A DNA stretch of 64,000 nt from Penicillus capitatus (taxonomy: Eukaryota > Plantae > Chlorophyta): NCBI GenBank assembly GCA_965649825.1, contig OZ287710.1, positions 62,001 to 126,000 of the forward strand, written 5' to 3'. Position numbers and translations under genes: made by a program. Shown here one piece after another: positions 3,001 to 39,913 of the stretch (positions within the stretch are counted from its first letter, which is position 1; the number at the start of each line of letters is the position of its first letter). The notes under the pieces are model-generated. The model ran no database searches and was not told where the DNA came from. It was given only the letters and a program-made list of their open reading frames with translations.

Positions 3001-4051
3001 CGTACTTATCAGGAGAACTAGCTCCACTTCTCATCTGCAACAGGTGGCATTGGTTTATGGAATCGATCTCCACACTTCTCCCTCCTTCTGCGTTCTGACC
3101 ATGGACCAACAGAGCGCGGAGACCGACAGAGAATATCTCTTCTGGCATCCACTTACAGGAAAACGACATAAACTCAAGGATGTATCGAATCCATTGAGAG
3201 AAGTACAAGATTCTTTAACCCCATTCAGATGACAGGCTGGCGCTCATCGTTAGGTTCATTGTGTCTTCGATCGGAAGAATATCTGGGCAAATATCCAACA
3301 GGCTACAGAACCTTGGCTTTTGGATTGGAATTTGCACAAGCGCACGAAGTGGAAAGCACTCTACGGCAAACGCCATGCGAGATCGGCTGCCATGGACGTC
3401 CAAAGACCAGTTAGCTACACGCAACACAAAGAAGCAACCATGCTGTACCAACAGCTGGAAACCAAAATCCTTGAAATCGCCAAGGAAACCATCTGTCGTA
3501 TGTATGCTAAACGCAAAATCATAAAACGAGTGGCTGTCTTGTCAGGAATGCGAAGATTTACTGTCACTCCACCACACAAACGCGCAGCACGTGTTCTGAA
3601 GCGACTACTCTGTGAACTTCCTGACGCTTTGCAACAACTGGAAGAAATGGAAACCGACGTCATCCTTTCGCTCTCTATCTCTTTTTTCTATTCATCGTTG
3701 TGCTTCATCTAGGAAGGCGATGGATGGATGTTGAAGCAACAGTGGATCAGCGCTTTGGAAAGTAAGCACAGGACCGAGCTTGAAAAAGAGATCGGTCACG
3801 ATTGCTTCCATGGATGTGTTCTCTCGATCCCCTTCACAGATTCTCTCGAGCACGGCATAGAGAATCTCGTTTCGAAATCTAGATTGACAGAAACACAGCA
3901 AACGGATGCGAAACTCGCCATTGCCGCTCTTATTGAGCCCTCACATATTACATTTGCCTGTCGCATCTGGCTATACATTGCTGTCATCAATGAGCATCGT
4001 TGCGACATTAGAACGCATCAAAAACAAACGTGCGAGATTAAAGATCTGTAA
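1..4051 (+). CDS. CC2D2A: Coiled-coil and C2 domain protein 2A (MKS6, ciliary transition zone), multi-exon, 5' end outside window
   Basis: Spliced exons give CC2D2A-type segments: FKVLLHAQPNRMTLNLYQ (first C2), PFVEVHHNGARVRTFAASGVDPTFNQK|IELPF..DVIDIQVLDE..LLGTLEI..ITTPPVLLTY (C2), LLDLAAGSGREHAFLLAGYF, EYLFWHPLTG and C-terminal RIWLYIA. Introns are about 45-55 bp, one GC-AG (2168-2217). Exon structure at 530-665 is ambiguous. Confidence 0.9.
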
Positions 4052-18800: not shown

Positions 18801-21800
18801 ATCAACGACTCGGATCGAGAAGATTGAGCCTGAGATGGCGTTGCTCTGCTGTGAGCATCGATTGGCATTTCATCCCATTCGAGCTCTTCGAGATCGAGAA
18901 AATCTTGATGGTGATCTGGAAACATGGCTCTGTAAGATGCTTCTTCCGCCTCTTCATCCGTTTCCATTCGGAGCGTCTGTGCACTAGTTTTGAACAGTTT
19001 TGCCTCCTCTTCTGCTTTGGAGTCCCGAAATGCATCGAGCTTCTCGAAAACGTGCATTAGGTTTCTGGCCAGTGTGCTGAATTTCGCCTCGGCTGTGGAC
19101 TGAAATGGTGTGTCCTTGAGACATCGGCAATGAAAAGTCGATACACAGAGAGCCACATGTAAGCACATTAACTGCATTTCGAATACAACAGCATCGGTGT
19201 CTGGCACCTGGAGAAAAGTGAGAGGACTGCCAGAGGTCTTAACGGAGAAGGTTACTTCTAAATCCGTGAATCTGTTAAAGAGGATACGGCCAATTTTCTC
19301 AACGGTGTCCTGCATCCCAAGATCAGACGCGTCATGATTCGGTATCACTGCCATCATCTCCTCTGCGCATTTCTCCATGAACGAACACTCAGGACGGACG
19401 CTTTGGACTCTTGTAAAGGATGCTATGGCACCGAGGCCATGACAGATCTCTAAGATCCCATGGAAAAATGGCTGAAGAATATCCATATACAGTGGGTGAT
19501 CTTTCTCTGTCTGGCGCATGAAGTTCTTGGATGTTTCGATCCAGTTGAGGCTTTGCGCAGTAATGGTATCCTTATCATCACATGCCTTGTCGTCGAGGCC
19601 TCTCATCAGTTCCTCAATTCTCTCCAATGTGCCTACGAAGCATGTCTTTGTGAGGCAGGGAATGTCGAAAGGCGCACCCTGAGAGGCCAAGTACTGATGA
19701 AGGCAGTGACAGAGTTCTTGATACTGAGACGGTTCTGGTCGGGCGACAGTTTGCTCGTTGAGTATCGCCACCTGAGCCTCGATCATATGGATGGTGTTTG
19801 ACAGCTCTTCAATCTTCTCTGTTTCGTCGAATCCTCCAGCAATGCTCTGGATGTCTTTTCGAATGGCCAGTTCAGGTCTCATGTCAGAGGCAAGAGTGAA
19901 CGATAGATGTCGTGCCTTGAACTGCTGCTTGGTGGCGGGGTCTACACCAACGGGAGGAATGGCCAGACGCATACGCAGATAACCCAGCAGTACCCATGCT
20001 TTGCCTAAGCAGACCAGTGCTCTGGCTGATCGGACTGGATGTGCCTTGACCAGCAGATGGCAACAAGGCAGATAACATGTCTCGGAGAGGGTAACCATCT
20101 CTGCATGATCACTGTGACCAAAATGAAGTGTTAGACATCTCAGCACATGCTGCATCGTATCATCTGCATCTTCAGAATCTCTGCTTTGCATAAAGCGGCA
20201 GAAATCACGAAGCAGCTGTTGAATGGCTGATCTGCTTGTCGATGGAAAACTGCTGAGATGTGCCCATAGGATACATGCCAAGCTAACGGCTATCTGATAA
20301 CGCATGTCAAAAATAAACTGTTGACTGGAGACACGATGTGAACGAAATGCACACAGCAGGTGTCTGGATGCCAGTTTGAGGTGCCTCAAAAAGCATGGAG
20401 CATCCAGGATTGAAGGCATCTCTCTTGTGCATGACGCTGCAGCAAACGTTAGACTTCCCTACAGACATGAGTGGTAGGTAACAGACATCGACATGGTCCA
20501 CTAAACCTGGTAGATAATGGCTGGTCCATCGAAATGCGTATCTGGAAAAGGCACCTGTGGTCCAAAGTGCTTAACGGAAGGCAGCGTGATTTGTGTCAGG
20601 GTTGTAGAAATCAGCCATTGATAGAGAGCATTCTGCATGAGACAACAACACGCATTTCGCCAGTCGATCTGAGGGGAATTGTCGTCCGATTCCTTTTGTG
20701 TGGCATCCAGGAGCCACAGGATATCTTGAAGGGCGGTCATGTAGCTGACAGGAAGGGCATGATGATCTGTGGCCTCTTGGATCTGCCATTTTAATTCATT
20801 AGAGATGTTCTGTGCATTGCTCTTGTTTTTGTCCTCGATTCCGCAAACACTTAGAAGCCACGGCAGCAGAAATGTCAGAGAACTTGTGGAGTGAACTGTT
20901 CGCTGTAGACAGCGGAGATGTGTTTGAAAGCCACGATTGGATGACGACTGCATGTACATGGGTGTCAAGAAGAGCTCGAAACTTCCACTTCTGCCGTCAG
21001 TGATCCGGCTTCCTTCATGTTGATCGACGAGTCTCTGTCGAGCGACTTGTATTTCTGAAAGAGTTAATTCTAGAGCTTCGCAAACGACAGCATCTGTCCC
21101 ATTCTCTGACGCACATGTGTATGCTGCCAACGATGAGATGGACAAAGCGCCCAACAACGATCTAAAGAAGCATGTCTATCGACCAGACACGAACAACCAT
21201 TGGTCCGTCCAGGTACCTTCTCAGATGAGGATCGTGCATCAGGCCTGTCAACAGAGCTAAGCAACGCTCTTCTTGAGTACCGCGCTCATGTTCTTCGATG
21301 TCCATGTTGACAGGATCGGCCTCTTCTAGCAACTTCAGTTCTCGGAGGATGGACAATTGTGTCGGATCCGCCATGCACGCATCGGGTTCTTCGCTGAGGA
21401 GAGCGCAGATATTGGCAAGCTTCAGATGATGGTGGGCTGTTTCAAGACATCGATGTTGTCTCGGATGGCCACCATGTTTCCACAACAGGGATTTGTGTGC
21501 CTCGATCTCTGGTAAACCGAACGCCGCATTCATGCCATCAGCGATCAATCTCCACCTGAGATACAGAGAATTAAACGAACCAGAGGAAATCGAGATAGGT
21601 TAACGGAACTTTGCCGAGAGGCTAGAAGACAAGGGGAACTTCGCTGCTGCTTTCGTAACGATCTTTCTCATTTTGACCCAAATATAGATGACAGTATCGA
21701 GAAACTCCTGCTTCAGCTGTTGTCCTGCCTTTACTGCCATCCACTGGTGCCAAAAATGACGAAGGTGCTTCAGCAGTGCCTCCAACTACACTGGCCCAAA

Positions 21801-24800
21801 GTCACACCATCCAGGACAAGCACATGTACCTCTGGCATGCTGTATTCCGTGACCCTTTGGTTGTTCCCGTGTGCGATTGCCGTCTCAATGTAATCATGAA
21901 AGAAAGAGAAGACAGGGAAGATCCATTCAATCAGCAGTGTGTGTGCGTGTTTGAAATTGTGTCGAAAATGCGTCTCTGTTGCTCGGATGTATGACAGCTG
22001 ATAGAAGGTGTTCTGTGTCAGGATCTCCAGATTTGCGTTCTTGCAACTGACAAGACCTTCGCACTGCAGCTGCAGATCCTTCATCAGCATCGTCAGAGAC
22101 TCAGAGGATAACCTCTGGTCTACAAAAACAATAGGAACCTCCAGTCCTAAGCACTCGCTCATAATCGACGCACCTGATGAAGCATTCTTCCAATAGGCTG
22201 GATCAAACGGAAGGAGCTTAGACCACGATGGATGGTTGCCTTGTGCAGAGCAAACAAAGTCTCGAAATAAACGGCTGCGACTTAGATTGTGTGCCATCTC
22301 GTGCAAGTGATACCAAATGGGCATCTGAAGACACACACTGTCGATGTAACGTCTTGTGACAGGGGCATACATGTAGACTCCAGTGCTGGATGTGCTGCAA
22401 CTGCTCTGCGTTCATTCTTGATATCACAATTCTGGGAGCAATCCATGCTTCATGTATTCCTGATTGATTGGCACCGTATTTCGATAGGATCAGGGTATCT
22501 CGAAACATGGATGAAGCCAAAGATGAATCTGCCATGGACGAAAGGGAAAGCGATCTCAGTATCCACAGTGGAGGACCCTTCTCTTTCTTCCGAGGGATGC
22601 TGACCTCAGAGCTTTCTCCAGTTCCTCTGTCGCTGTTGTGCTCGGCAAACATCTCCTCAACAACTGTCACATCATGTCTTTCCATACTGGGCTGATGGTA
22701 AACCTAGAGGCAGAAGAGAATCGGAGTCAGAGTATATTCTTCTTTAAATCATCCTCATGTATCATATTCACTAGCATTCATGTCATCATTTTTGAGAGCA
22801 TTGTCTGATCAGCGGTTTGGACATTAGAATCATGTTGACATCATTCGAAAGATGGTGATGTGCATCATCCCCTCAGACAGGCAAAGGCAATTGAGTGGTC
22901 AGAAGGAACAATTGTTTTTTGCATTTCATAGACAGGCCAGTCCAATCAAGTGTACAAACAAACTCATCATTCCTCGCCGTAAAGATGATGCACAAGGTCG
23001 AGAGCGATGGTATTGGTATTCGGAAGGTTATATACAGGGTTACCTCTTCATAGGCAGCACGAATGGCACATGCCGGATCGCTCCCTGCCTCTGAAAGATT
23101 CTTGAACAGAGAAATGGCCTGGAAGAGATCTCTGATGTTTGGTGTCTGTCCTGCCCAAGGCCTTGATGTCTCGAGATGCAAAGCGTGTGCTTTTGTTAGT
23201 GCTTCAACTGCCGATGTTTCGTGGACTTGCATGGCAGACTGTATCATCATTGGCAGATGCACAAATGTCTTTCTAAGGACAGAATCGGCGACGACACTAG
23301 AAATCTGACAGACAGCTCTGTCAAAAGAGATGTCTCAGTTCTCGGAGATGTACCTCGTTGGGCAGATAGGTTTCTAGGGAGCGATTTCTCATGGCTCTCG
23401 ATATCTCTCCATTCTTTGGATCATAGCTGAGAAACAGTCGAAAATCTGAATGCGGTTTGATAATGCGTGCTTCTCCATTGGTTCCTCCACATTCGTTGAG
23501 ATGGAGAACACCATCTGGCTCCATCACAGAATTCAGGCGATCTAACACTGTAGGATTGCAGAGATTGGCATGATCCAACAACAACCAATCGCCGTTCTCC
23601 ATGGCCTCTACCAATGCACCATCCACCCATTCAAAACAACCTGTTAAACATCCATCCCTTCACACTGCTGTGACATTCTCTTCTTGTGTTTACCAGCCGA
23701 GGTGCATTCGTTTGAATGAGAAAGAATGTCGTCTATCCTTGTTGAGTGACATTTCACCAGATCTATAAGATGCTGTGGAGCGTTGTCATGCTCCAGAAGG
23801 CTCTTGAGTTGTTGCAGGAAGGATGGAAGAAAATCGGAGAGCGATTCCACTTTCGCCTCGGCAAACCCTATTCGTTTTTCCATGTCGCTTCCAAACTCCT
23901 CTAGCCTCCCACTAAGCTCCAGAAACTGCAGGATGGCACCTGGATTTAATTCAGAAACGAGCTCGGCGAACAGGGTTCTTGTTAATGCTTCTGTCTCTTT
24001 GCAAGCCTGCACACCTGTATGCGATCCAAGAAAGAAAGGTTGATGGAGTTACTTTCAGCATGTGTCTGCTGTTCTCTCGTTTTTCAAATCCACCCAGCAA
24101 ATCACTGGAGTCGGTCCCTGGTGTTAAAGTGACTTCCACTAAATGCTGATGACATAATGCTGCCAAACAACGTACGAGGCATGTTTTTCCACTGCTCGAA
24201 GGGCCGACAATCAATGCTGGCCAATTCTTGACAACGCATACGGCCAACGATTCCAGAAAGGGCAAATGATGTTGGATAAGGAACAGATTTGCCAGCCGTT
24301 CTCCTGCACCTAAACGCAGTATCCCTTCTCACATAAATCGTCGAGATAAGGGACAGAGATGCATTTGGCATTTCATATCAGAATACGTGCATGTGTAATC
24401 ATCAATTGCTTTCATCCCCGAAAGATGGTTTCAAACAGTATCATCATTGCCGAAATGCACCATACATCCAATCCAACACTTACTCTGAGACATGCGTCGA
24501 AGATGCTGGTCTCCGATGACAATGCAGGATTCGGAGATCAGCATCCTTGGAGAGGAACACCGAAAAGCGGCGTTGAAGATTTCATGATACAAGGCGCTCA
24601 GAGATTGCCTAGAATGCATTCCTGTGTCAATTAAACGACACGTGGACCTGCAGACTGCATTGAACCTGTCTTCGTTCGAGCGAAAACGTCGACAGAACAG
24701 AATCTCTGCTGCCTTCATGAGATTTGATGCAACATCCGATGATCCTTGCGCCCCGTCTTCTACCAGTGTTGCCCATCTATGCACTCCTTTTATAGTAAAT

Positions 24801-27800
24801 GCGACAAAGTGTGACACCTTGCCTTAAAAAGTCTCGCAGATTGAATTCCCATGGACCACCACTGCTTCCCATTTTGCCGCTGGCGCAGAGTTGGCTAACC
24901 CGAGACAAAAACTGAACCATCCCATACAAGATTGGCGTATCGATTTGATTGCTGCACAGTGCCAATGCTATCTCTGTCAGATCGCTTTGCCGAAAAGGCT
25001 CGGCGTAGACTCGCGTAAATCTGTTCAGAAAGGACTTTGGGAGTCCCTTTCGCCCTCCTCCTTGACCAGTCGGATTCTGTGAGGCAAAAAGCCGAAAGGA
25101 AGCAGGACATGTGAATGTTCTATTCAGTTCGGGGACGAAGATCTCGGTTCGATGATCTGTTAGAGCGTTCAATCCTTCCAAGATCTGTTGATTGGCCAGA
25201 TTCAATTCATCGAGGAGTACCCAGTATCCACCCTTAATGGCACGGAGCAATGGTCCATCACACCAGCGAAACTGACCAGGTCTGCCGCCAGAAACGGGTA
25301 GATCTGCACCGAGGAGATCCATCATGTCTGTCTGTTCACTTAAGTTGATTCGGATCAGTCTATGGCCTGTCAAAGCGGCAAGGGCAGAAACCAAACTCGT
25401 TTTGCCAACTCCTGGACTGCCTTCCAGCAGGACTGGTTTCTTCAGCTGCATGGCACGGAGAAGACGAAAGACATTGCGCTTTGGAGTTGGCGCTGTCAGG
25501 TTATACTTGAGATCTGCGATGGGCTCATCAGATCCGAGAGGCAGGGCAAAGGGAGATAAGGCAAATACTCCTTGATGGACATGACACTCCAATCCTGTCA
25601 GATCTCCTTTAATTTGAGCCAGGGTTTCATCACAGTTAACAGGAATGAGTTCATGGAGGAGTTGGTGAGATCTGGTTCTCAAGCCTGAGATAACGTCTGC
25701 TCCTTGGGAAGCTAAAGACAGCTCCAAGCCGTCCAAAAAGACCATTGCTATCCCATGCAGCAAAGCTGGCCATTCTCCCAGCAATGTAGACATGCGATGG
25801 GTAAAGTCTGCGACAGAGAGCAGATCACGTATCGTGACGGTTGCATGCGTATCTGCTATCCATTTTCGGAACTGAGTCGTAAATTCTAAGAACGCGCAAA
25901 CTAAGGGACCCCTCGACGGCAGATCCTGCATATGGATTTCGAGAATCGGTCTAAGTTCAGAAGGATCGTCGATGGGAGGAACCCAGATCTGTGTAAAACG
26001 ATTTGAAAGGGCAGGGGAGAGTTCTTTCTTTCCGAAATCGCCTCCGGGATTCATTGTTGCCACGATTCTGAAGTCTGGATGGGCAGTGACGATTTCTGGC
26101 GGCTCTCCTCCCTTCTCGGCAAGTGTGAGCGTTCGTCCGACATCCAGCACACTGTTCATGCGTTCGAGCACGGCATCTTCTGCCAAGTTGAGCTCATCGA
26201 TGAGGATCATGTCTCCTTTCTTCATTGCCTCGACCAGCACACCATCCTCCCACAGAAACGGCATCTGCAAAGAAGCAACGAGAGATGCCAGCTTCTGATG
26301 TGACACATTCAGTTGCTTCAGAGTACATTGGTCTCTGGCGATCCTCCTCTTTTCCTTCTGTGAAAGGACATGCGATTGAGCTTTTGCATTCAGGGTATCT
26401 GCCAATGCCCTCAACGAACAAGCTTTCTCTTCGATCACAGAAGACAGCTCGTTGAAGGGCAGTATCTCGGTATCTGTGATCGGCATATCGATGTTATGTC
26501 TCTTCCATAAAGGATGCGTTTCAAAATGCGCCAGAACTTCTTGACATTGTCCTTTGAGATAGGACCGATCTCGCACTGGTCTGAATCCGCCCACAAAATC
26601 TGCCGTCTCTGTGTGCAGATGGCAGTTCAGGATATGGAGTTTCTGATGGTTCAGTCGAGCCAATTCCTGACAGACGCTTGTCTTGCCGGTTCCTGTATCT
26701 CCAATCAGCAGCACAGCTTCTTTCATTGTCAATGCTTTCTGCACCAACTGAAACATCCTCGTCGTCGAAGGGATCCACTCCAGTGAACAAACGGAGATGT
26801 GGTTCTGCGATGGTGGGACCGTGTAAAGCGTCGAAACATCGAGAGGCACTTTCATGGTCCTTGAAAGAACCTCCAAGACGGTTTGTTTCTCTGCATTGTT
26901 TCGCAGACGCTCGGCCAGTACGTAGTAGCCGTTCTCTGTTAATTGAGCGTAGCCATCCGCTGGCCGTTCTGCCCAGCGGAATAGATCACGGGCCGTGATG
27001 TATCCGTGTTTTCCTGCAAAGGCATTGCTCATCTGTCTCCTTCTCTGCAGTTCCCTCATGACAGTGATCATCTTTGTGGCGAAGCTGCGCGGAATCTCAC
27101 TCCTTTTCTCCAGAATCTCAGCGAGTTCTGAATCGGGAATGTCATCGATGTTCAGTTCAAGGAACCGACTGCGGAAAGCTCTGGAGAGATGTTTGCGTCC
27201 TGCATAGTGCATTGGCGGATTCTGTGTTGCAAAAAGCATGAAATGTGGATGCGGTTTGATTGTTTGCTGCAGATCTGGAACATAGAGTTCCCGATGATCA
27301 TCTAGTAGTCGATTCAATGCCTCCAGCACTTCAGATGGGGCTAGATTCAACTCATCCAACAGAATCCAATATCCTTTCCGCACGGCTTGGACCAAAGCTC
27401 CTTCCATAAACACAAGCTGTCCTGTCGAATCGGCAACGTAGCATCCCAAGTACTCCTGCAAATCTGTGTGTTCGTGGTTGTTCATACGTATCAGCTTATG
27501 ACCTAGACGCCACATCTGCTTCCTCTGTGTCCACGTGAGAGAGGGCCGAGTCACCTGTCTGCTCTGCCAGATGAGCAACCAGTGTCGTCTTACCACTGGA
27601 TGTAGGCCCTTGAAGGAGAATTGGATGGTTCCTAGATACAAAACGCGAGATCGGATGAGGCTGTTCTCGAGACGGTCGTCCTACCGAAGAACAACAGCTC
27701 TCGCAAGATTCTTGAGGTTTTCGGCGATGCTTGGTGTTACAACGAATTTCTTTCCCGTTGCACATCCATCCACTGGTATCTCTTCTGTTCCAGTTTCTAA

Positions 27801-30800
27801 CCAGAACTGTTCAAACAACACTGTCTCCTGCTTTCCTCGCGGCCGTTGGGGAACTCTCTTAGGCACAACGGGATCGATATCTTCTGCCAAGATGTCGTGA
27901 TGAATGAGATTTGCCATTTTGTGATGCGAGATGCTGTCCAACTGCGTCGCGAAGGTCATCAAGGCACCATCCATCAAGGCTCTTTGCAGTCCATAGGTAC
28001 CGGCCATCTTCTGAATGTACTCCAGAAAACGACACAGTGTGCGAAGGCTGTAACAAGGGGACTGTCCTGTACCATCTGTCAATCCACCCCTGCTCTCTTC
28101 TTTCACTTTTATATAGAAATCGACAATTCTCGAAGCTGTCATAGGCGGTCCGAGTTGTGAAAGATATCCAGAAACGATCATTTCCAGATCCTCCCTGCTC
28201 TCCGGTTCTGCAAACCAGAATTCTGTGAACCTGTTTCTGAGAGGTGCAGCGAGATCCCGTTTGCCAAAATCCGTTGCCGGATTCATGGCCCCTATCAATC
28301 TAAACTGAGGATGCTTTGGCACAAGGACGGATCCTTGATCGGCAAGTGTCAGAGACACATTCGGTCCTGGTTCCAAAACAGCAGCCAAGCAATGCAGCGT
28401 TTCTGGAGGAGCTAGATTGATTTCATCCAGAAACAGCCAGTATCCTTGTTTCAATGCCTTCAGCAGCATTCCCTCAACATACTGAAAGGCAAATGATGCC
28501 GATGCTGCACGACGAAAACGACACGCCTTGGTGTAGTCTTCTTCAAACCGTAGCCATTCTTCTCTACGGAGAACACCACTCATTCACGTCATGTCGAGTC
28601 TCATGCAGCAGAGATGATGTACCCGAGTTCAGATGTCACATCCTGTTTCTGGCGTTTTGCTCGATGAGAAGACGTGACCGTCTCCACCTCTGCATCTGAT
28701 CGTGTCGATCTGGCTTTGTCGATGGCGACCTTGAAAGCGCGCTCCAAGTTTTTCCAGTGACTCCTTTCGGCATACTTAAGAACACGCGCCACAAATGCCT
28801 CATTGTTGCCCTTGGTCCATGTTCTCTTCATAAGATCCAGTAAACGATGAACGAGGGGCAGGAGAACATCTTTTGGCGAAATCGGCTTGAACCCGCCCAG
28901 TAGATCCGAGCTATCTGTCTGCTGGCTGAGATTCAGAACAATCAGTTTTGCTCCTACATGTGAGGCAATGTGTTGAACCATGGCTGTTTTACCCGTTCCT
29001 GTCTCGCCGATCAACAAAGCAGACTCCTTCATTTGCAGACATGTTGACAGTTGCTCTAACAGCCGAGCAGAGTGGCCGGTGTGCACAAACAGTGCCTGTC
29101 TCTGCATCGGATGAGTGCGCTTCACAACAGACAGACTGGATCGACCGATCCGCACTTCATTCTCTTTCACCTATATCCACCACAGACGCATTCAGATCAG
29201 GTGCACAGAATTCAAGTGTCAGAGCTCTGTAACGTTCAGATTCGATAACGGAATCTGAATTGACTGGAGATCTGTTTTTATTTACTTGGACGGAAAACAT
29301 GATCATGCCTCAAGATGCATGACTGTAGACTTGACCAAGCATCAAAGATTATTGTCGATCACGCGCGGGTCGTCCTCACCGTGATCGATGGTTTGTTCAG
29401 GAGGAGATGATGCATTGCATCTTGTTCGGTAAGGCACCAGAGAGAGGCAAATCCACGCATGAGAAGCAGCTTAGATTCGAGAGATGGCAAAAAGGCTGCA
29501 TAGCAATCGTGGCATTCGGCCAGTGCTGCGTGACGGAGTGCAAACGGCAGGCGTTCCATGTCAACACGCTCCAGTCTATCGACACGATGCAAGATATCTC
29601 CATGCAGAGTCTGCAAAGACACCATATCGCATTTAAACGTCATGTTGTGTGCGAGGACGATGGTGTCACTTGCAATCGATGGCACCATTTGTGGATGTCT
29701 CTTAAGGAGAAATGGCGTCCAATGTGCAGCCGGTGAACATCTGACCCACAACACTCCATACAGCGCGTCACCAATTGGCGAAGATCTGGGCAATCGTGGA
29801 AGGAGTCCAGATGGCATTGGTTGGTGATGCACTGAATGAAGAGGAGCGCAGCATATGCAAATGGCAAAAGAGGCAGCAGTTGAGGAAACAGTGTTTGAAG
29901 AACGAGGACGTGCTCCTCCAGAGATGGAGATGGTATTCTGATGATGGAAAGCAGACCACTCAGCACATCCTACCACACAGGCATGACCGTTCGATAACTG
30001 TTTTCAGGAATTGGATGGACTTTAATAGCATCCGCTGACCCATAGGTACCCACACCACTCCTCTCTGGAGCGCAGGTCACGGTGGCGATGAGATGGAACC
30101 CATCTCGGATGTTTAGTGTTTCTGCCCTTTGAGGAATGGCCAATCTTCCATTCTCGAGCAAAGGAATGAGGGATGCCAGCACTTCAGGTGGAGCCACATT
30201 AATATCTTCAACAATTAGCCATTTTCCGTGGCTTACTGCCTGTCTGGCACATTGAAATGGGATCGGCAAGATGGTGAAGTAAACCTCTGCCAGTGGTCCC
30301 GGTTGCCATCGGAATTCGCCAGGAGTGGATGTGCAGACATAGGCACCGACAAGGCTCTTGGCATCCATCTGATCATCGATCTGTATCCAAATGGCATCGT
30401 CGTTTCTTGTCTGGCGCAGCATCTCCCTTATACACCGTGTCTTTCCACATCCTGCACAAGGAGTCAGTGATTGGTAGGAGTCTCGGCATCAATGCTGTCG
30501 CATTAGATACAAAACACGGACCAAGTGAAATCATCATCCCCTTGATTACGTTACAGAATCTCAGTTAAGGAATCAGTGAGTGCCTCACATTGGCTATGAA
30601 TTGCCATCGAGAAGAACGGAATCATCAGAGATTCATACAAAAGACTCAGTTGCGACTAATACCCATATCAGCACGTGCCGGAGCACATCAGTTAGGGATA
30701 ACTGGAATAGCTTTCATCATTGCCTTTCGCATCTTATTGCCAAACACGATCGAATGCTGTTGTCACATTACCTGGGGGACCTTCCAAGAGACATGCTCGA

Positions 30801-32067
30801 CGTTGATTCAATGCCACTGCCATAGAGAAGAGAGCACGCTGAGATGTGGGTGTCACGACAAATGCCATGGAAGGAACTTGGTCCGGAATGGCATGTCTTT
30901 GTCTGGCTCTCCTAAGAAACGAACACCGTTCCATGTATTGTCTTTCTCACAGAAAGAGCTCTGTGTCTCAGACGAGGATCTGATTTTTAGTCATCGGCAA
31001 GTGAAGCCTCTTCTAGGCTAGACTTTCATTCAGTTCATCATGGACATAGATAGATAGATGGCCCGACGGCAGATCATGGAAGTACCTCGATGCAGCAACA
31101 GTGACACCGGCAATGGATACGTAATCTGGTGGCAATGCAACACTCTCTTCTGCGTCATCTGTCATGAGTTGCCCCTCAGACAGTAATGAACTCTCTCTGT
31201 CACACTTAGCTGCCATCTCGCTCGATTCTGAGTCTTCGTTGTCGAGTCTCGCATGTCTGTTAGAAAAAACAGGTTCTAGCGATTTTCAGAATCACAGATC
31301 GGGAATCGCACTTGAACGAACAGGATAGGATGGTAGATGTCGGCACTTTGAATTTTTGATACAGCAGCATTTTGGTTTCTTCACTCAAAGCAAGGATTTT
31401 TGCGATTGCTTCAATGCCACACCATCGTATGTTCTCATTCTAAATCCCATCGTCAAACGATAACTCTCGATCTTCTATACGCACCTCATGCATCAGCGTG
31501 GCCTTCCAATCAGCAACATTGCTTAGATAAGGCACTTCCAATGGGATCGCATCCAGGAGGTATAGATATGCATCTTCTTCCGACAAATGACACATAGATT
31601 TCACATCCCCATAGTCAAGAGAGACACATTGAGGTGTTTTTTGGATCAGTTCCTTCACACTTCTACAAGATCATGATGATCTGAACGGACAGCGTTTTGA
31701 AAAGGTTATGAACCTTTTGAGGGTAGGAAATCGGCGATACACTCGACACAAGGCGACGGTCACCAAAAGAGAAGGGACACTCTTGGACAGCGCCTTCAGT
31801 CCTCGGGGCAGCAGCGCGATCAGGTGCGGGGCAAAGCACTGCAACGTGACACGTGTCGTGGATGGCACCACGAGCCCCTTAGCGAAGATCTGAACAACAA
31901 CCGGCGCGTCTATATCTTCGTCGTCCTATAGGCACTCCGCCTCCATCCACGAACGCTCTCTACCGTCATATGGAATGGACCAGGAGATCGTGCCTCTCCA
32001 CGACGTCGCGATAGGCTGCCGTTGCTCGAAATCGCTCGAGACATTGGTGCAGAGTAGGACACGCCAT
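12852..32067 (-). CDS. MDN1: Midasin (Rea1), AAA-ATPase for pre-60S maturation, roughly 25-30 exons
   Basis: Six AAA modules (LLEGPP|GCGKT, GETGTGKT, QGPTSSGKT, GDTGTGKT, EGSPGVGKT, GPSSSGKT), LDELNLA repeats, PWEFNLRDFLR|W, a long linker, a D/E-rich region and a C-terminal MIDAS domain (AIDDSKSM). Exons were traced across all ORF-track breaks. Start MACPTLHQCLERF is inferred. Confidence 0.98.
22723..22795 (-). ncRNA. Box C/D snoRNA candidate, target unknown (MDN1 intron 22704-23043)
   Basis: Minus strand: C box ATGATGA (22783-22789), internal D' ATGA and C' ATGATT, D box CTGA (22727-22730). No terminal stem and no recognised rRNA complement. Confidence 0.6.
22802..22879 (-). ncRNA. Box C/D snoRNA, predicted guide for LSU rRNA Am807 (yeast numbering; snR39/snR59, U51 type)
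   Basis: 7-bp terminal stem TGTCTGA/TCAGACA, C-like ATGATGC, 12-nt guide CACCATCTTTCG complementary to conserved LSU CGAAAGAUGGUG, D' ATGA and D CTGA (22809-22812). The D'+5 rule lands on the A equivalent to yeast A807. Confidence 0.88.
22895..22975 (-). ncRNA. Box C/D snoRNA, predicted guide for SSU rRNA Am541 (yeast numbering; snR41/U62 type)
   Basis: C box ATGATGA (22964-22970) and D CTGA (22899-22902), preceded by CAATTGTTCCT, complementary to 18S AGGAACAAUUG. D+5 lands on the A541 equivalent. Confidence 0.8.
24368..24458 (-). ncRNA. Box C/D snoRNA, predicted guide for LSU Gm805 (snR39B/SNORD2 type) and possibly an 18S Cm (human Cm174 equivalent); MDN1 intron 24310-24483
   Basis: Flanking stem GCATTTC/GAAATGC, C box ATGATGA (24441-24447), 13-nt guide ACCATCTTTCGGG before D' ATGA (D'+5 = G805 equivalent). 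A 10-nt TGCACGTATT before D CTGA (24378-24381) is complementary to plant-type 18S AAUACGUGCA. Confidence 0.9.
29214..29341 (-). ncRNA. Box H/ACA snoRNA, 3' hairpin predicted to guide pseudouridine in LSU helix 69 (yeast 2258; snR191/U19 type); MDN1 intron 29171-29379
   Basis: Hairpin 1 (CTTGG/CCAAG, TCATGC/GCATGA), H box AAATAA (29278-29283), hairpin 2 (CAGA/TCTG base, TTCAGATTC/GAATCTGAA top), then ACA plus 3 nt. Pocket AGTCA + GTTAC pairs with GUAAC-UA-UGACU, 14 nt from ACA. Confidence 0.85.
30457..30544 (-). ncRNA. Box C/D snoRNA, U18/snR18 type, predicted LSU Am649 guide (MDN1 intron 30452-30771)
   Basis: Stem CAAGG/CCTTG, C box ATGATGA (30531-30537), 14-nt guide CTTGGTCCGTGTTT complementary to LSU AAACACGGACCAAG and D CTGA (30464-30467). 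The D' box is degenerate (TGTA). Confidence 0.88.
30556..30634 (-). ncRNA. Box C/D snoRNA candidate, target unknown (MDN1 intron 30452-30771)
   Basis: Terminal stem GAATC/GATTC closing C-like CTGATGA (30622-30628) and D CTGA (30561-30564). Lies between two recognisable snoRNAs. Confidence 0.65.
30640..30727 (-). ncRNA. Box C/D snoRNA, snR38/SNORD1 type, predicted LSU Gm2815 guide (MDN1 intron 30452-30771)
   Basis: Stem AAAGGC/GTCTTT, C box ATGATGA (30714-30720), 12-nt guide CCAGTTATCCCT complementary to LSU AGGGAUAACUGG, D' CTGA (D'+5 = G2815 equivalent) and D CTGA (30646-30649). Confidence 0.9.
30964..31046 (-). ncRNA. Box C/D snoRNA candidate, target uncertain (MDN1 intron 30912-31085)
   Basis: Stem TGTC/GACA, C box ATGATGA (31035-31041), D' ATGA and D CTGA (30968-30971). 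Splicing out the whole 174 bp joins TVAASR|RARQRH in frame. Confidence 0.72.
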
Positions 32068-34157: not shown

Positions 34158-36922
34158 ATGCGACTCGCATTCGCGCTTGAAACGCTGATGCCTGCGATGA
34201 CGCCTCTACGTGCGACGACACGGATCGTCGATTTCCCTCGTTTACGACGTCCATCTCGACGGCACTCCTCCCGACGCGAAGCTGTCGGCCATTCGAACGA
34301 CGCACAGAGCGTCTCGTTGCCGAGTCCTGTCCAACGAGAGGGTCCCAGCACGGATGCTGATGTGATCTGGAGCCGCCTGCAGAGACTGGCGTTGCCGTAC
34401 TGGACGGATGCTGAAGTGGGATCACGTGCTCGGTGGCGTCTGGCAGGCGTTGTTGCCCTGACGCTCGCTACGACGGGCATCAGGTAGTGTCCTGTTTACC
34501 CACTCCCGTTCGGCATCGTACAGGATGTCTGCAGTGTTGGTTTTAATTTTATGGGTCGCGATTTTTTCAACGCCCTCTCAGAGAAGAACGTCGAGCAATT
34601 CACAACGCAACTCGTTAAATACTTGGCCGTTTTTCTCGCCGGGATTCCTGTCTTCGTCTTCCGCACATACTTCCAGGTGGAGACATTGCCCAAAATCTTT
34701 GTTGACTGTGTCTAGTGTGTACTTTAATTTCACGGCGCGAGATTTTTACAATGCCCTGGATGCCAGAGATAACGTAGAGCTGCGGATTCAACTGTTCCGA
34801 TTCTTCATGGGGACGTTGATCGGAACACCAGTCTTTGTTTTCAGTCGTTATGGAAAGGTCTTTACACCATACACACTCTTATCTCACACTTCTGCATGGC
34901 ATGGGCTACTCTATGAACATTGTCCTGATGCAGAACACTCTGGCGAATGACTGGAGGGAATGGATGGCCGAAAAGTTTGTCTCGGATTACTTGGACAATC
35001 GAACGTTCTATCAAGTGCAGTCCACCGCCGCCTTTGACAATCCAGATCAGAGGATTTCAATTGACGTTCGGTAAATCTCTTACAGATGATGGCGGTGTGC
35101 GTGTTGAGATGGGGATGTTGCTGGATTAGGGTGTTTACAGAAACGGCATTGGGGTTTGTGTTGACGCTGTTAAATGCCTTCATCGATCTCGTGTCCTTCT
35201 CTGAAATCCTGTTCTCCATCTATCCGCCGCTGTTTGTAGCATTGGTTGTCTACTCCGTCGGTGGAACATGGTTGTCTGTCATTATTGGTCGAGTGCGTTT
35301 TGACAGATACGGGCCAACAGTGGTGATCGATGCCGACTGCTGTGTAGAAACTGGTAGGACTGAACTTTCGACAAGAAGCAAAGGAAGCAGATTTTCGTTT
35401 TGGCCTTGTCCGAATACGGGAGAACGCTGAGAGCATCGCCTTCTATAGCGGAGAGAAGAAGGAGCAGAATGTGCTGCTAGAGGTGGTTCCCTCAACTCCC
35501 TCCCTCTCACACATCCCTCTCGCGTTGGATTTAGAGATTGCAAAAAGCCATTCTAAATTACAAAGATTTGCTGGTGGCTTCGAGGAATTTGGACTTCTTC
35601 ACCACCTACTATCGATATTTAATTCAGCTGCTGCCAGCGGCTGTCGTGTCACCTATTTTCTTCAAGGGAGAGATTGGATTCGGTGTGGTCACACAGAGTG
35701 CTTCTGCTTTCAGTCACATCTTATCTGACGTCTCGCTTGTCGTCTATCAAGTCTGCCATTCTGACAACACTGTCCTACGTGACTCTCGTACCCAATGCAC
35801 AGTTTGAAGCACTAGCAGGGTTCAGTGCCGTCGTCGATCGCCTGGGAGAGTTTGCAGAGACGGTGGATGCCTTGAAGGAAAAATCTGCGTCTCCTGTGGG
35901 AGAGAAAATCGAGTTGAAATCGCAAAACCCACCAGAGAAGCCGGAACAACCATTACTCAAAGTGGAAAACTTGACACTCTTAACGCCGGATACACGTTCC
36001 GTGCTCATCGAAGATCTCAGCTTCGAAGTGAGATAGATTTCTCTCGTGTCTTCAAGTCTGGTCGGGTCTCCTTCGTTAGGTCTCGCAAAAACGGTCGTTG
36101 CTGATCATGGGACCCAGTGGTGCAGGAAAGACATCCCTGCTGCGTGCCATTGCTGGATTGTGGTCCTCCGGTAGCGGATCCATCACACGATACGGCAGTC
36201 CAATTGATGCAAAGAACCAGAGGGGCAACATCATGTTTGTTCCGCAGAAACCCTATCTCGTTTTGGGAACTCTTAGAGATCAACTGCTGTATCCCACATG
36301 GGCCAATGGAGTCGCCCCCACCCATATCAACCGTCAGTCTGGCCTTCTGCACTTCTAGCATTCCTGACGGGAGTCATGGGGTATAGATGACGGCAAGGAA
36401 AGACCCGTCCCAAACGACATGGAGTTAGAGAAGGCAATGCTAAATGTGAATCTTGGCGATGTCTTGCAGAGATGTAGAGAAGGTATAGGCATTGATGAGA
36501 AATGCATGGATCTATACAAGTCGAGATGTTGTAGCATCTGCGGGATCCAATGCACTGGATACAGTGACAGATTGGTCGAGCCAGCTGTCTGTTGGGGAGC
36601 AACAGAGACTAGCATTTGCTCGGATTTTGCTCTCTTCTCCTCAACTGCTGCTCATGGATGAATCGACCAGTGCATTAGACATCACGAACGAGCAAGCTCT
36701 GTACAAGGTTCATTCAGCATTGGTGTCTTCGCAATCTGTTCTCCTGAATGGGTCATCTGTCTTTAGTTATTGTCGGATGCTGGTATTTCTTATATCAGTG
36801 TTGGACATCGACCATCGCTCAAGGGCTTCCACAGTCATTCGTTGCATCTAATGCCTGCTGTAGAGGAAGGCCAAGGCGCAAAGTGGTCTATTGATGATCT
36901 CACTATGGCGTCATCTACTTAA
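34158..36922 (+). CDS. ABC transporter subfamily D, plastid ABCD2-like half transporter, with two alternative paralogous exons
   Basis: Transit-peptide-like N-terminus, [42 protein letters not shown] (EAA motif), Walker [30 protein letters not shown] and SVGHR. Confidence 0.95.
34535..34676 (+). other. ABCD alternative exon A (142 bp)
   Basis: CAG acceptor in phase 2, CAG|GT donor in phase 0. Encodes [47 protein letters not shown]. Confidence 0.9.
34716..34857 (+). other. ABCD alternative exon B (142 bp), paralogous to exon A
   Basis: TAG acceptor in phase 2, AAG|GT donor in phase 0. Encodes [47 protein letters not shown], 20/47 identical to exon A. Confidence 0.85.
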
Positions 36923-36960: not shown

Positions 36961-38419
36961 TTATTCATTAAAAGTTGCATCTTTCAGTGCGGCACGGTCC
37001 AAAGCAAAATACCGAAGGACATTGCGCATCTCCGGGTCCGTCTCTTCTGTGATCAAGCTGCTGAGAATGTGGCCAATGACACTGCTGAATTTGAATCCCA
37101 TGCAAGAACAGGCAGAACAGAGCACAACCTAAATTCGGCACCTCACACAACAGCCAGGCATTGTGCAGCAAAAACTTGTGGGAAGAGAGGATGTCGATCC
37201 ACAACGAAATTTTTATCAGGGACGTTCGTGCAGAGACAGCTCGTCATTTCGTGCAAGCGATGCTGACCTGGACGAAAATAGAATCCCAAAGCATCGTCCA
37301 GAACCGACCGATCCTTTGAATGCACATGGCGATCCACCGATGAAGGATCGACGCTCTCATGCAAATGTCCAAACTGTGCGATTTTCATCCCTAACAGCCA
37401 CTTCTGAACACATCCAGGATGAAAAGCCTGTCTAAAGAGACCTACCTCTGTTTTCGTAAGAGGGCACACCGTAAGCGTATTCTCCAGACGGTAGAATGCC
37501 AAGAAAAGTTGGCAACCGTTCCGGCGCGAAGTCCTCTACTGGTTTGCTCTGGTACCATCCGATCACTTGCCTTTCGATGTCGCATGCCGTCTGAGAGCAG
37601 CCATGAATCATGATCGGTCCTTGTTCTCTTTACCTTCATCTGGGGCACGAGCTCATTGATCCACGGACCACAGGAGAGGATGAGACATTGTGCATAGTAT
37701 GTGTTCTTGTTGGTCTCCACCCTTACGCCTGAACCATCTGGAGCCCATTTCAGGACGCGCTCGCCCACGTGGACATCTGCATTCATCTTCTGCGGGCAGA
37801 GGATCGGCAACGGAACACAGAATGCCACCTTCTACTCTGATACCTTTGCTAGGGATACATGTGTGTACACTGCTTTATTGGAATCTAGAAAGCCTCCTTC
37901 TGGATCAAAGAGCACGGGCAAGGTTTCATCCTTGACGTCCATTCCGGGAAACTGTTTGTGCATTTCGTTGACAGACATGATGGAATACTCTCGTGACGTT
38001 CCTTTCGAAGCATCTGCCATTCTGGCAGCAAAAGGACCAATGTTCAATGTGCCGCATCGATAGAGGAGTTTCTAGAAAAGCACCATGAAAATGCGGAACG
38101 GTAGGAATATTTCATGCACCTGCCGACTGTCTTCCTCTAGCTCTTCCCACAGCTTTCCAGCCCAAATTGCGAATGGCGTATAAGGATCAGCGGATGGGTG
38201 AGCGACTCTAAAGATCCGAGTGTAGCCGTGAGAGGATCCAAAAGAGTGCCCCACATCAAACTGCTCAAGCCCAAGCATCTAATGCCAGTGGAGAAGTTGG
38301 CTGAAATGAGCCTTTGAATACACGACTTTGAGGGAAGATCGCGAGCCATGATATAGCGCAGCGCTGCCCATGGCGCCGAGACCCACTGCAATGGCATCGT
38401 AGGCCGCCCGTATCTGCAT
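36961..38419 (-). CDS. FAD-dependent sarcosine oxidase / pipecolate oxidase family, multi-exon
   Basis: YDAIAVGLGAMGS (Rossmann fold), GLEQF..GHSFGSSHGYTRIFR, FDPEGGFL, CLCTNVPDKNFVVDRHP and SACSCMGFKF. An in-frame upstream ATG at 38491 is also possible. Confidence 0.93.
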
Positions 38420-38497
38420 CGCTACTCTGCTCGAGCGCCTTGTCCTTGACGGCGGTGAACAGCGCTTTGCGAATCGCGATCGGATTTGCATCGAACA

Positions 38498-39004
38498 ATG
38501 GGCAACAAACCCAGTTCCGACGCGGGTATGTATCGTGTTCAGCCAGACGAGCTGGACGAAGGACCGAGCTCAGCTGTGGACACTCGAAGTGTCGTGGAAA
38601 GACTTCACGCTCTACCTCAGCTCACACCCCTACTGCAGCTGGCATCTGATCCACTCTGGGAAGACTTGCGCCGTCTGCAGAGCATTTCTAACGACCCTGT
38701 CCAGCAACAGCTGCGAAAAGATCTTGAAGAAATGTGGAAGGCTTTCAGAATATGGGCTCAAGTGCACGAGGCTGCCGTTCATGAGAAACAGATTGAGTTG
38801 CATACGATGCTGGATGATGTTGCCTTGCTTATTCAGCGGGTGCGGGAGAAGGTGTTGCAAGAGAAGGCAGCTTCTGCTCAGCTTCGGCAGGAGATGGATG
38901 CTGTGCAGGCCATCCATCAGAGAGCACAGAACTTGGCACGGCAACTGCAATCCTTTCATCATCGACTTCACAATTTGTCGAACGTTCAAGGAAGCAAGCA
39001 TTAA
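38498..39004 (+). CDS. Small coiled-coil protein with an MG N-terminus, BORCS5 (myrlysin)-like
   Basis: 168 aa from MGNKPSS (myristoylation-type). VVERLHALPQLTPLL resembles the BORCS5 KLQEIPTFQPLL block and is followed by long helical segments. Remote similarity judged by eye. Confidence 0.6.
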   Translation: MGNKPSSDAGMYRVQPDELDEGPSSAVDTRSVVERLHALPQLTPLLQLASDPLWEDLRRLQSISNDPVQQQLRKDLEEMWKAFRIWAQVHEAAVHEKQIELHTMLDDVALLIQRVREKVLQEKAASAQLRQEMDAVQAIHQRAQNLARQLQSFHHRLHNLSNVQGSKH

Positions 39005-39913
39005 GAAACAGCCTTAAAGGCCACGGCCAAAACAATAATGAGGCCAGCAACTAAAAGGAAGATCAAACACCACCATTTCCATTCACTGGCTGTATTCATG
39101 ACGATGTGAATGTGTTTGTTTGCCACGGTCAGTCGATTGTGTACAGTATCGGTCTCTTCTTCGAGATTTCCCAGGAGGGCCTCCTGCTCCGTCAACTCTT
39201 CATTGATGGCACCCGCCACATGCTGCAGGGGATATGCTGAGAACAGCTCAGGAGAGATGGAGAACGCACTTTTACAGTGTGCACGGATTTCTCGATATGC
39301 ACAAGCTCCTCGTCCTGATCCTTCATGATGCGATCCTGCATAACCAGGAGCTCCTGGTTATCCAATCCTGCTGTCTGTTCTGTCTCTCTGGGAGGTCCAC
39401 TTGACTGCCCAGTTCCAAACAAACCTGCCCTAAGCATGGCGCCTCTCGTCATGCAGCATCGCCTGATGGGCGGGTACTTGTCTCCTGTGTCTCTTGCCAT
39501 GCCTTGAACCAAATTCTCTTTCTTGCTTTCTAATGTCCTGATCAAATCTCGTCTTCTGTTCCGTTCGTTTTCTGTACTGCGAAAAGAGAAGGATTAAAAG
39601 AGTGAGAATCACTCAATTTGTGAGGAAGGCATTACATGTCTCGTGCAACTCTCGGATCGTTCAGCATTTCTCTGAGCGTCTGGATGGCTGTTCCCAGAGA
39701 GCCCAGTTTCCTTCGGGCTTGAGCAGTGATATGGGAGGCACGACTGCCACCCGATGGATACTTCAAGTTACGCTCCTGTGCTCATTCGATTACTCTCACA
39801 CATCGTCTAAGGAACAGAACCTGAAGAGAAGCCGCAATTTCTTGCGCCATCTCAACCGCGCGTTCGTGTTCTCTTAACCACGCATCGGTATCCAAGTCAA
39901 GACCTGAACCCAT
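39001..39913 (-). CDS. Qc-SNARE, SYP5 / syntaxin-8 type, 4 exons
   Basis: DAWLREHERA..ARRKLGSLG N-terminus, SNARE motif QDRIMKDQDEELVHIEKSV..AINEELTEQEALLGNL and a C-terminal transmembrane segment. Confidence 0.92.

Follow-up and report, generated by a model that had tools for sequence, protein, structure and literature searches.

Homologous mutually exclusive exons are a major source of isoform diversity in animals, and cases in the green lineage have rarely been documented. Animal pairs that arose by tandem duplication include exons 2 and 3 of alpha-tropomyosin, which are kept apart by a steric block, exons 3A and 3B of the mitochondrial phosphate carrier gene SLC25A3, and the clusters of Drosophila dMRP; such pairs are regulated by known tissue-specific factors or RNA structures. 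Clusters of the docking-site/selector type, in which RNA structures compete, are exemplified by Dscam and ATE1 (PMC6071210, PMC7797038). Among green algae, exons 4 and 5 of Volvox carteri cyn23 are homologous, and their mutually exclusive use has been verified by RT–PCR (PMC4378016). Mutually exclusive homologous exons are therefore already known in Chlorophyta; the case described here, in an ABCD2 gene, is new.

The locus lies in a 64,000-nucleotide stretch of DNA from a bryopsidalean green alga (the window). Like cyn23, it has adjacent homologous exons of equal length in a green alga (106 nt in Volvox, 142 nt here), with predicted isoforms of equal size that differ at a subset of residues. 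The Volvox gene encodes a cyclophilin, comes from the Chlorophyceae and is experimentally verified, whereas the window pair is known from comparison only; it has been conserved over deep divergences, and other algae have a pair at the same exon. With the animal pairs it shares homologous neighbours of the same length and phase, a frameshift on double inclusion and alternative versions of a membrane-spanning transporter segment; in some cases, the distance from donor to branch point is too short for splicing. The animal pairs differ in having known regulators, and the algal spacer is short in some species only (24 and 39 versus 311 and 854 nt). Like clusters of the Dscam and ATE1 type, the pair stems from an exon that was duplicated in tandem together with flanking sequence (9 nt upstream here), but no RNA structure of that kind was found in 34470–34945.

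The window gene is an 11-exon gene for an ABCD2-type (chloroplastic) ABC half-transporter (Table 1). The encoded protein has an N-terminal ABC_membrane_2 domain (PF06472; 174 bits, cut-off 24.4) followed by one ABC_tran domain (PF00005; 82.5 bits), an architecture that matches chloroplastic plant ABCD2 (Arabidopsis At1g54350 type) and the cyanobacterial-type COG4178 or SbmA–BacA-like half-transporters. Exons 3–11 encode the rest of the membrane domain and the ATPase domain, in the translation of which the Walker A (GPSGAGKT), signature (LSVGEQQR) and Walker B (LLLMDE) motifs are readable. The best protein matches are from Caulerpa lentillifera (68%) and Bryopsis (62%), and the named top matches are all ‘ABC transporter D family member 2, chloroplastic’ (49–68% identity); identity to plant ABCD2-type homologues is about 50% over 90% of the length. 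Relatives in the PDB are ABCD1, ABCD4 and Rv1819c, and the plant ABCD1 deposited there aligns only domain by domain, with lower similarity than the ABCD2 proteins. On these alignments, we assign the gene as an orthologue of plant ABCD2 and not of peroxisomal ABCD1/CTS. The conserved core is preceded by an N-terminal extension of about 60–90 residues, in which R, S and T are frequent; the choice of start codon among in-frame ATGs at 33969, 34158 and 34188 is uncertain. To our knowledge, no substrate is known for the ABCD2-type family. The transit peptide of Arabidopsis ABCD2 directs the protein to the chloroplast inner envelope (bioRxiv 10.1101/2024.02.14.580295). The GC content of the window is 48.7%, intermediate between those published for C. 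lentillifera (40.4%) and Ostreobium (52.4%), and the protein encoded by the window gene itself is absent from the protein collections searched.

Table 1. Features of the ABCD2-type gene, in window coordinates
Feature	Coordinates	Strand	Length	Description
Exon 1	34158..34483	+		N-terminal extension and start of TM1; basis, ABCD2 protein homology
Intron 1	34484..34534	+	51 nt	GT..AG
Exon 2A	34535..34676	+	142 nt	Canonical copy; encodes end of TM1, turn and outer half of TM2
Spacer between 2A and 2B	34677..34715	+	39 nt	GTGGAG...TCTAG; in-frame TAG on retention
Exon 2B	34716..34857	+	142 nt	Diverged, B-type copy; conserved in L002, L003 and Caulerpa lentillifera
TAA	34725..34727	+		Ends the reading frame when 2A is spliced straight onto 2B
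Intron between exons 2B and 3	34858..34933	+	76 nt	
Exons 3–11, span	34934..36922	+		Final exon includes stop; introns 52–59 nt
Exon 3	34934..35070	+		
Exon 4	35130..35292	+		
Exon 5	35348..35482	+		
Exon 6	35535..35750	+		
Exon 7	35803..36027	+		
Exon 8	36080..36332	+		
Exon 9	36387..36482	+		
Exon 10	36535..36707	+		
Exon 11	36767..36922	+		

Exon 1 ends in GGCATCAG before its GT donor and carries over two bases (AG) of a split codon, after which 2A and 2B are both open in the same phase. The flanking sequences are CTGCAG and GTGGAG for 2A, and GTCTAG and GTCTTT for 2B; all four twin-exon sites are YAG acceptors or GT donors, as they also are in Bryopsis (L001), in two related genomic contigs (L002 and L003) and in Tetradesmus obliquus (L007). 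The twins are identical at 20 of 47 residues plus the common split codon, and at 73 of 142 nucleotides, and the repeat unit includes 9 nt upstream of each. When the 64-kb window was searched with the exon A peptide (tblastn), exon B was returned at E = 1.2e-9, with no other match; judged from sequence, the likeness is not due to chance. Third codon positions are saturated between the copies (32% identity), with positions 1 and 2 at 57–64%. An earlier note on this DNA had taken exon A as the canonical copy and B as the diverged one, and the scores bear this out: A reaches 80 bits and B 47 bits against a green-plant consensus, and the A and B isoforms score 174.4 and 168.5, respectively, with Pfam ABC_membrane_2. 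Each isoform translates to a full-length protein of 673 residues in which the Pfam domains are complete.

The arithmetic of the reading frame is central to our interpretation. As the length of each twin is 3n + 1, either exon alone keeps the frame. Splicing both into one transcript gives the junction TGT GTA CTT TAA, exactly as the earlier note had read it; skipping both shifts the frame and leads to stops in exon 4, and retention of the spacer also introduces a stop. The coordinates of the same note proved exact, as did its observations of equal length, common phase and a frameshift on double inclusion. A productive mRNA would thus join exon 1 to exon 3 through exactly one twin, 2A or 2B, and the two resulting full-length proteins would differ solely in 47 residues, which form the membrane-domain hairpin on the outer side, away from the ATPase. 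The exclusivity of productive products would be set by the frame itself, with mRNAs containing both exons or neither expected to go to nonsense-mediated decay. Because the frame is lost whether both twins are included or both are skipped, A-only and B-only mRNAs should each be translated, and it is on this ground that we regard 2A and 2B, with a probability of about 0.8, as a tandem-duplicated, evolutionarily conserved, mutually exclusive exon pair in a chloroplast-type ABCD2 half-transporter gene. Mutual exclusivity in the mRNA is what we infer from selection and frame logic.

Absence or degeneration of exon B in relatives was the outcome that the earlier note had named as damaging to its claim; the opposite was found, with full-length copies, intact splice sites and strong purifying selection. 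L002 has exon A at 28–169, a 24-nt spacer and exon B at 194–335, and L003 has exon B at 65–206; all of these twin-type exons are 142 nt in length and bounded by AG and GT. In Caulerpa lentillifera, for which the gene models g593.t1 and g593.t2 were read, an A copy precedes a B-type copy in which G-H replaces the family-invariant R-D; B may be drifting in this species, on the basis of the gene model. Bryopsis (Bryopsis sp. KO-2023; BSYQ01000001.1, about 9.83 Mb) has an unannotated second 142-nt copy (L001:4262–4403); its annotation, for which RNA-seq was used, gives the first copy (L001:3809–3950) only. Tetradesmus obliquus (CP126210.1) also has two 142-nt copies (L007:2045–2186 and 3041–3182). 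Five other green algae have a single copy of the 142-nt exon and, unlike in the window gene, no twin is visible in them.

In a tree, the B-type exons group together as one clade (support 100/98). Exons 3–11 give the species tree (Bryopsis,(Caulerpa,(window,(L002,L003)))), and on the sequence evidence we place the duplication before the split from Caulerpa lentillifera. The pair is possibly conserved across Bryopsidales. With regard to the number of duplication events, no topology was rejected (AU P = 0.2–0.5, 47 columns). We tentatively raise the idea, which we consider rather less probable than its converse, that the 142-nt ABCD2 exon became an alternative pair on more than one occasion, in the Bryopsidales (Ulvophyceae) and in Tetradesmus (Chlorophyceae), the close relatives of which have one copy, and that this reflects a recurrent advantage of having two outer TM1–TM2 hairpins. 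If so, one half-transporter locus would, without gene duplication, encode the two unlike members of an asymmetric dimer, or else two variants that differ in substrate or gating.

Both copies carry the mark of selection. Between orthologous B exons, dN and dS are 0.167 and 2.24 (window and L002), 0.194 and 2.06 (window and L003) and 0.173 and 1.48 (L002 and L003); for exon A of the window and L002, dN is 0.156 and dS is saturated. The dN/dS ratio of exon B over these three genomes, a comparison that the earlier note had called for, is therefore about 0.08–0.12, and its dN equals that of exon A. Conservation is far stronger at codon positions 1 and 2 than at position 3 (Fisher P = 0.0004 to 0.004 among B orthologues and 0.001 for A versus B). 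Of the 9 residues in the segment that are invariant in the family, exon B retains 8, and it has a type-specific signature of conserved residues in four taxa. By these measures, purifying selection maintains both 2A and 2B across species. It is thus very probable that the membrane domain is made in two versions, and the suggestion of the earlier note that one gene yields two such isoforms gains support from both exons being conserved, selected and frame-exclusive.

These patterns also bear on readings in which B contributes no protein. Were 2B a dead tandem duplicate left out of every transcript, the gene would make the canonical A protein alone, and the greater divergence of B, the presence of the first copy only in the annotated Bryopsis protein and the failure to find B-containing proteins in the databases searched would be as expected. 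A search of a 5.8-billion-protein collection with the B region gave no candidates; a profile built on fragments of the B isoform of three species retrieved distant A-type fragments from protein databases and no B isoform; and neither a scan of JGI metagenomes with a B-exon profile nor a search of JGI metagenome contigs for a degenerate spliced junction of B with exon 3 returned a match. However, a neutral copy so old that its third positions are saturated would no longer have an open frame or intact splice sites, yet positions 1 and 2 remain well conserved, B is exactly 142 nt with AG/GT boundaries and an open frame in three genomes (dN/dS of about 0.1, dN as in exon A), and its signature persists in four taxa. 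We consider a dead duplicate very unlikely. A second possibility is that B acts as a ‘poison’ exon with no coding role, its inclusion beside A bringing in the TAA and down-regulating the gene through nonsense-mediated decay. The immediate stop in the A–B transcript and a 39-nt spacer that could be spliceable are compatible with this, but a stop alone would suffice for such a role, and 47 conserved codons would not be needed; the codon-position pattern and dN/dS indicate selection on the peptide in the frame that runs from exon 1 through B to exon 3, and leave this reading with scarcely any credence.

We give equally little weight to joint inclusion, in which an internal in-frame acceptor would join both exons into a longer protein with a partly duplicated TM1–TM2 hairpin. 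Predicted gene models of Caulerpa (714 aa) and Tetradesmus (948 aa) take this form, but they mend the frame differently and ad hoc: B is truncated in the Caulerpa model, and the Tetradesmus model has a junk linker of 42 residues. The extra half-hairpin of 26–41 hydrophobic residues would, given the ABC type IV fold, be expected to invert the topology of the later helices and the ATPase domain, and truncated use would require neither the full 142-nt length nor the 5′ part of B, both of which are conserved. It is somewhat easier to imagine, although still unlikely, that both copies are conserved in the clade and that only one isoform is made here, the other having been silenced recently or being confined to a rare stage. 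Sequence cannot exclude recent silencing, and the donor and acceptor motifs of this genome are too degenerate to score; nevertheless, in the window neither exon is damaged and each of the four splice sites is intact, and the dN between the window and L002 is alike for A and B, with no sign of relaxed constraint on the window branch.

For the mutually exclusive pair that we favour, the earlier note had counted a short spacer among the hallmarks. The spacer is indeed the shortest in its surroundings, falling below all 16 other introns annotated in the window (43–76 nt), by 4 nt in the case of the shortest; these introns are 51–76 nt in the ABCD2-type gene and 43–55 nt in a neighbouring DAO-family gene, which was annotated by hand for intron lengths. 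A window-wide intron survey based on ORF-joining GT..AG candidates gave a signal that was not above its reversed-sequence control. As a general hallmark, shortness does not hold, because the spacers of Bryopsis (311 nt) and Tetradesmus (854 nt) are long. In L002, the case for a steric block is convincing, with a spacer of 24 nt against other introns of 39–64 nt; at this length, and possibly at the 39 nt of the window, the A donor would probably lie too close to the branch point and acceptor of B for joint use. A steric block is less certain here than in L002, as the 39-nt spacer may well be spliceable: the window has a 43-nt intron, and introns of 39–40 nt are constitutively spliced in relatives. 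Given these introns and the long spacers, the exclusivity mechanism common to all species is the 3n + 1 exon length and not steric hindrance. Competing RNA structure was also considered as a mechanism and rejected: the folding energy of 34470–34945 is no better than that of shuffled sequences (z = +0.83). Inverted repeats of 8–9 nt bracket exon A (34525–33 and 34678–86) and exon B (34714–21 and 34870–77), but their number is about that expected by chance (a rough estimate) and they are absent from L002.

On the AlphaFold model of the Bryopsis orthologue, the segment is a confidently modelled helix–turn–helix, in which a turn of three residues joins the outer end of TM1 to the outer half of TM2. 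The proposal in the earlier note that both exons encode the same transmembrane segment agrees with this model, which places them at the outer TM1–TM2 hairpin. The B-type signature includes Thr in place of Phe142 and Ile146 of the family, two TM2 positions that are separated by a single helical turn. Half-transporters of the ABCD type function as dimers. Because of this, and because the B hairpin has its own conserved signature, our best guess is that the isoforms assemble into AA, BB and perhaps AB dimers whose translocation pores differ, either at the outer gate or along the path of the substrate; a difference in substrate or regulation, as the earlier note envisaged, is speculation. The locus is suited to structure–function studies of how the outer gate operates in ABCD-type transporters, as it offers two natural hairpins that differ at otherwise invariant positions. 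It is also a test case for the choice between neighbouring exons in algae with introns of 40–60 nt, and for the role of nonsense-mediated decay in that choice. Annotation pipelines mishandle the locus: in the current models for Caulerpa lentillifera and Tetradesmus obliquus, the two copies are run together in a single aberrant protein, and the Bryopsis model lacks the second copy.

The window is eukaryotic, with a GC content of 48.7% and very short introns, and carries an ABCD2-type transporter gene whose second exon exists as tandem twins. With either exon 2, the product is predicted by Pfam to contain a complete ABC_membrane_2 domain (PF06472; 174.4 bits with exon 2A versus 168.5 bits with exon 2B), together with a single ABC_tran ATPase domain (PF00005, 82.5 bits). 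Its homologues are green-plant proteins named 'ABC transporter D family member 2, chloroplastic', with top matches at 68% identity in Caulerpa lentillifera (g593.t1) and at 62% in Bryopsis sp. KO-2023, which places the window in a siphonous green alga of the order Bryopsidales; relatives with solved structures are plant ABCD1, human ABCD4, ABCD3 and ABCD1, and Rv1819c. These domains and best matches bear out the plastid-type ABCD identity assigned to the gene in an earlier note. In Arabidopsis, the inner envelope of the chloroplast is where the ABCD2 transit peptide delivers its cargo (bioRxiv 10.1101/2024.02.14.580295).

Features of the transporter locus and neighbouring genes in the window
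Feature	Position	Strand	Description
Midasin (MDN1/Rea1)-like large gene	21770-31000	-	repeated dynein-type AAA_5 and midasin AAA-lid domains
Open frame, 475 codons	32998-34425	-	overlaps transporter exon 1 on the opposite strand
ABCD2-type transporter gene	~34158 to 36922	+	11 exons
Exon 2A	34535-34676	+	142 nt; YAG before, GT after
Exon 2B	34716-34857	+	142 nt; YAG before, GT after
DAO-family (sarcosine-oxidase-like) FAD oxidoreductase gene	36961-38450	-	seven exons
Coiled-coil-like ORF	38486-39004	+	172 residues; adjoins SNARE exon
SNARE protein, last exon	39001-39219	-	SNARE domain and C-terminal membrane anchor

Both twins begin within a split codon (two bases) and end on a codon boundary, and each is open in the entry-phase frame only. 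Their peptides share 20 of 47 residues, and the exon A peptide matches exon B at E = 1.2e-9, the sole match in 64 kb. The 39-nt spacer itself runs GT...AG and is the smallest of the 17 intervals annotated. Splicing 2A to 2B reads TGT GTA CTT TAA, with the stop at 34725-34727; retention of the spacer gives TAG, and inclusion of neither exon shifts the frame, with stops in exon 4. The equal length, shared phase, identity, A–B stop and a spacer shorter than most introns here, from which the earlier note had proposed mutually exclusive exons encoding two isoforms, are thus all exact.

Searching a set of 1.84 billion representative proteins with the 47-residue exon B peptide, we recovered two short 'proteins' (74% and 70% identity). 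Both are prokaryote-style ORF calls, made on genomic contigs (L002 and L003, Logan assemblies) that belong to related algae. On L002, exon A (28-169) is followed by a 24-nt spacer and exon B (194-335). On L003, exon B lies at 65-206, and the contig begins 42 nt upstream, after sequencing adapter; positions 1-22 are a Nextera-type adapter remnant (…AGATGTGTATAAGAGACAG), so the 5′ end is an artefact and the contig does not reach exon A of that species. All of these copies are 142 nt long with AG and GT flanks, and the remainder of the orthologous gene is present on both contigs, with introns of 39-64 nt. Exon B is therefore intact in relatives, the opposite of the absence or degeneracy that the earlier note had proposed checking for. 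The Caulerpa gene models g593.t1 and g593.t2 run from the A segment directly into a B-type segment (...LRFLMGTLFGTPIYVSRRYFK) and then into exon 3; the B copy is 5′-truncated and joined to exon A, adding 41 residues, and, as seen in the gene model only, has G-H where the family has invariant R-D. Here the predictor has used an internal acceptor to bring both copies into one reading frame. Elsewhere, the two models differ by one residue (RCKEASS in one, RCKEVASS in the other), a difference suggestive of a NAGNAG-type alternative acceptor.

Codon comparisons indicate that exon B is alive and under strong selection. Between species, its dN is 0.167-0.194 and its dS 1.5-2.2, giving a purifying dN/dS of about 0.08-0.12; for exon A, window versus L002, dN is 0.156 and dS is saturated. 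Matches between B orthologues fall mainly at the first and second codon positions (Fisher p 0.0004-0.004), and the same bias holds between A and B within the window (Fisher p 0.001). Of the 9 segment residues that do not vary among 50 green-plant sequences, exon B keeps 8. A B-type signature (Y120, D127, R137, F138, G141, T142, T146, R153 and K156, isoform numbering) is common to the window, L002, L003 and Caulerpa, and B-type exons form a clade (support 100/98). The gene tree of exons 3-11 is (Bryopsis,(Caulerpa,(window,(L002,L003)))), its nodes supported at 98-100; the exon duplication is therefore older than the Caulerpa/window split.

Bryopsis has a second 142-nt copy (L001:4262-4403), unannotated and intact, which lies within the intron that follows the annotated copy (L001:3809-3950), 311 nt downstream, and is consensus-like rather than of the window's B type. 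Unexpectedly, Tetradesmus obliquus (Chlorophyceae) also has two intact 142-nt copies (L007:2045-2186 and 3041-3182), with an 854-nt spacer, a stop when joined and a dN/dS of 0.42 between them; its annotated 948-residue protein OEZ85_011930, which carries both copies and a 42-residue linker, is probably a mis-prediction. A single copy occurs in Pedinophyceae sp. YPF-701, Coccomyxa elongata, Chlamydomonas eustigma, Chlorella vulgaris and Monoraphidium minutum, the last from the same order as Tetradesmus, yet with one copy. On the 47 columns, no topology was rejected (AU p = 0.2-0.5), so that one, two or three duplication events would all fit.

This comparative evidence supports exons 2A and 2B as a mutually exclusive pair, as the earlier note proposed. 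Because selection acts on the peptide that each exon encodes in the exon 1 frame, and because including both or neither destroys that frame, A-only and B-only mRNAs would each be made and translated, which is the definition of such a pair. No B-isoform protein was found in protein collections, and neither a B exon nor a spliced B-exon 3 junction in JGI metagenome contigs. The safeguard shared by all species is the 3n+1 exon length, with aberrant mRNAs carrying early stops presumably cleared by NMD. Steric hindrance is a plausible added block where the spacer is tiny. In L002, where the shortest of the nine other introns is 39 nt, the 24-nt spacer is too small to hold a branch point that stays clear of the A donor. 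The case is weaker in the window, where other introns are 51-76 nt in the transporter gene and 48, 48, 54, 43, 55 and 47 nt in the DAO-family gene: the spacer falls 4 nt short of the smallest of these, and introns of 39-40 nt are spliced in relatives. Folding of the twin-exon region (34470-34945) and a survey of inverted repeats found no competing RNA structure. An 8-9-nt inverted repeat brackets each twin exon (34525-34533 / 34678-34686; 34714-34721 / 34870-34877), pairing its acceptor with sequence just past its donor; by a rough estimate, such repeats are about as numerous as chance would give, and neither is conserved in L002.

The Bryopsis orthologue was modelled with AlphaFold (mean pLDDT 79; 88-93 over the exon region). 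In this model the exon covers residues 127-174: 16 residues at the end of TM1 (106-142), a turn of three residues, and 29 residues at the start of TM2 (146-205). The isoforms would thus differ in the membrane domain, as anticipated, and the model places the exon-encoded hairpin on the membrane side away from the ATPase domain. In B-type exons, F142 and I146 of the family, one helical turn apart, become threonines, and there are further changes in the turn and at L115-G116, which is nearly invariant. ABCD proteins function as dimers; therefore, two hairpins could, speculatively, yield homodimers that differ in the properties of the outer gate or the substrate path, or asymmetric heterodimers.

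Homologous mutually exclusive exons are well known in animals. The verified green-algal precedent is Volvox carteri cyn23, with two 106-nt mutually exclusive exons confirmed by RT-PCR (PMC4378016), whereas the window pair is known from comparative evidence. We found no published description of the ABCD2 pair in the literature; the gene, the depth of conservation and the type-specific divergence are new here, as is the same duplicated exon recurring or persisting in two algal classes.

Among the neighbouring genes, the repeats of the midasin-like gene explain the internal protein-level repeats in the window self-comparison. The 475-codon open frame may have arisen by chance or belong to a neighbouring gene, and the 172-residue ORF has no Pfam match. 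The SNARE gene has further upstream exons to about 39900 on the - strand. The DAO-family gene is convergent with the transporter gene, their stop codons lying ~40 nt apart, and its 43-nt intron is alternatively 58 nt.
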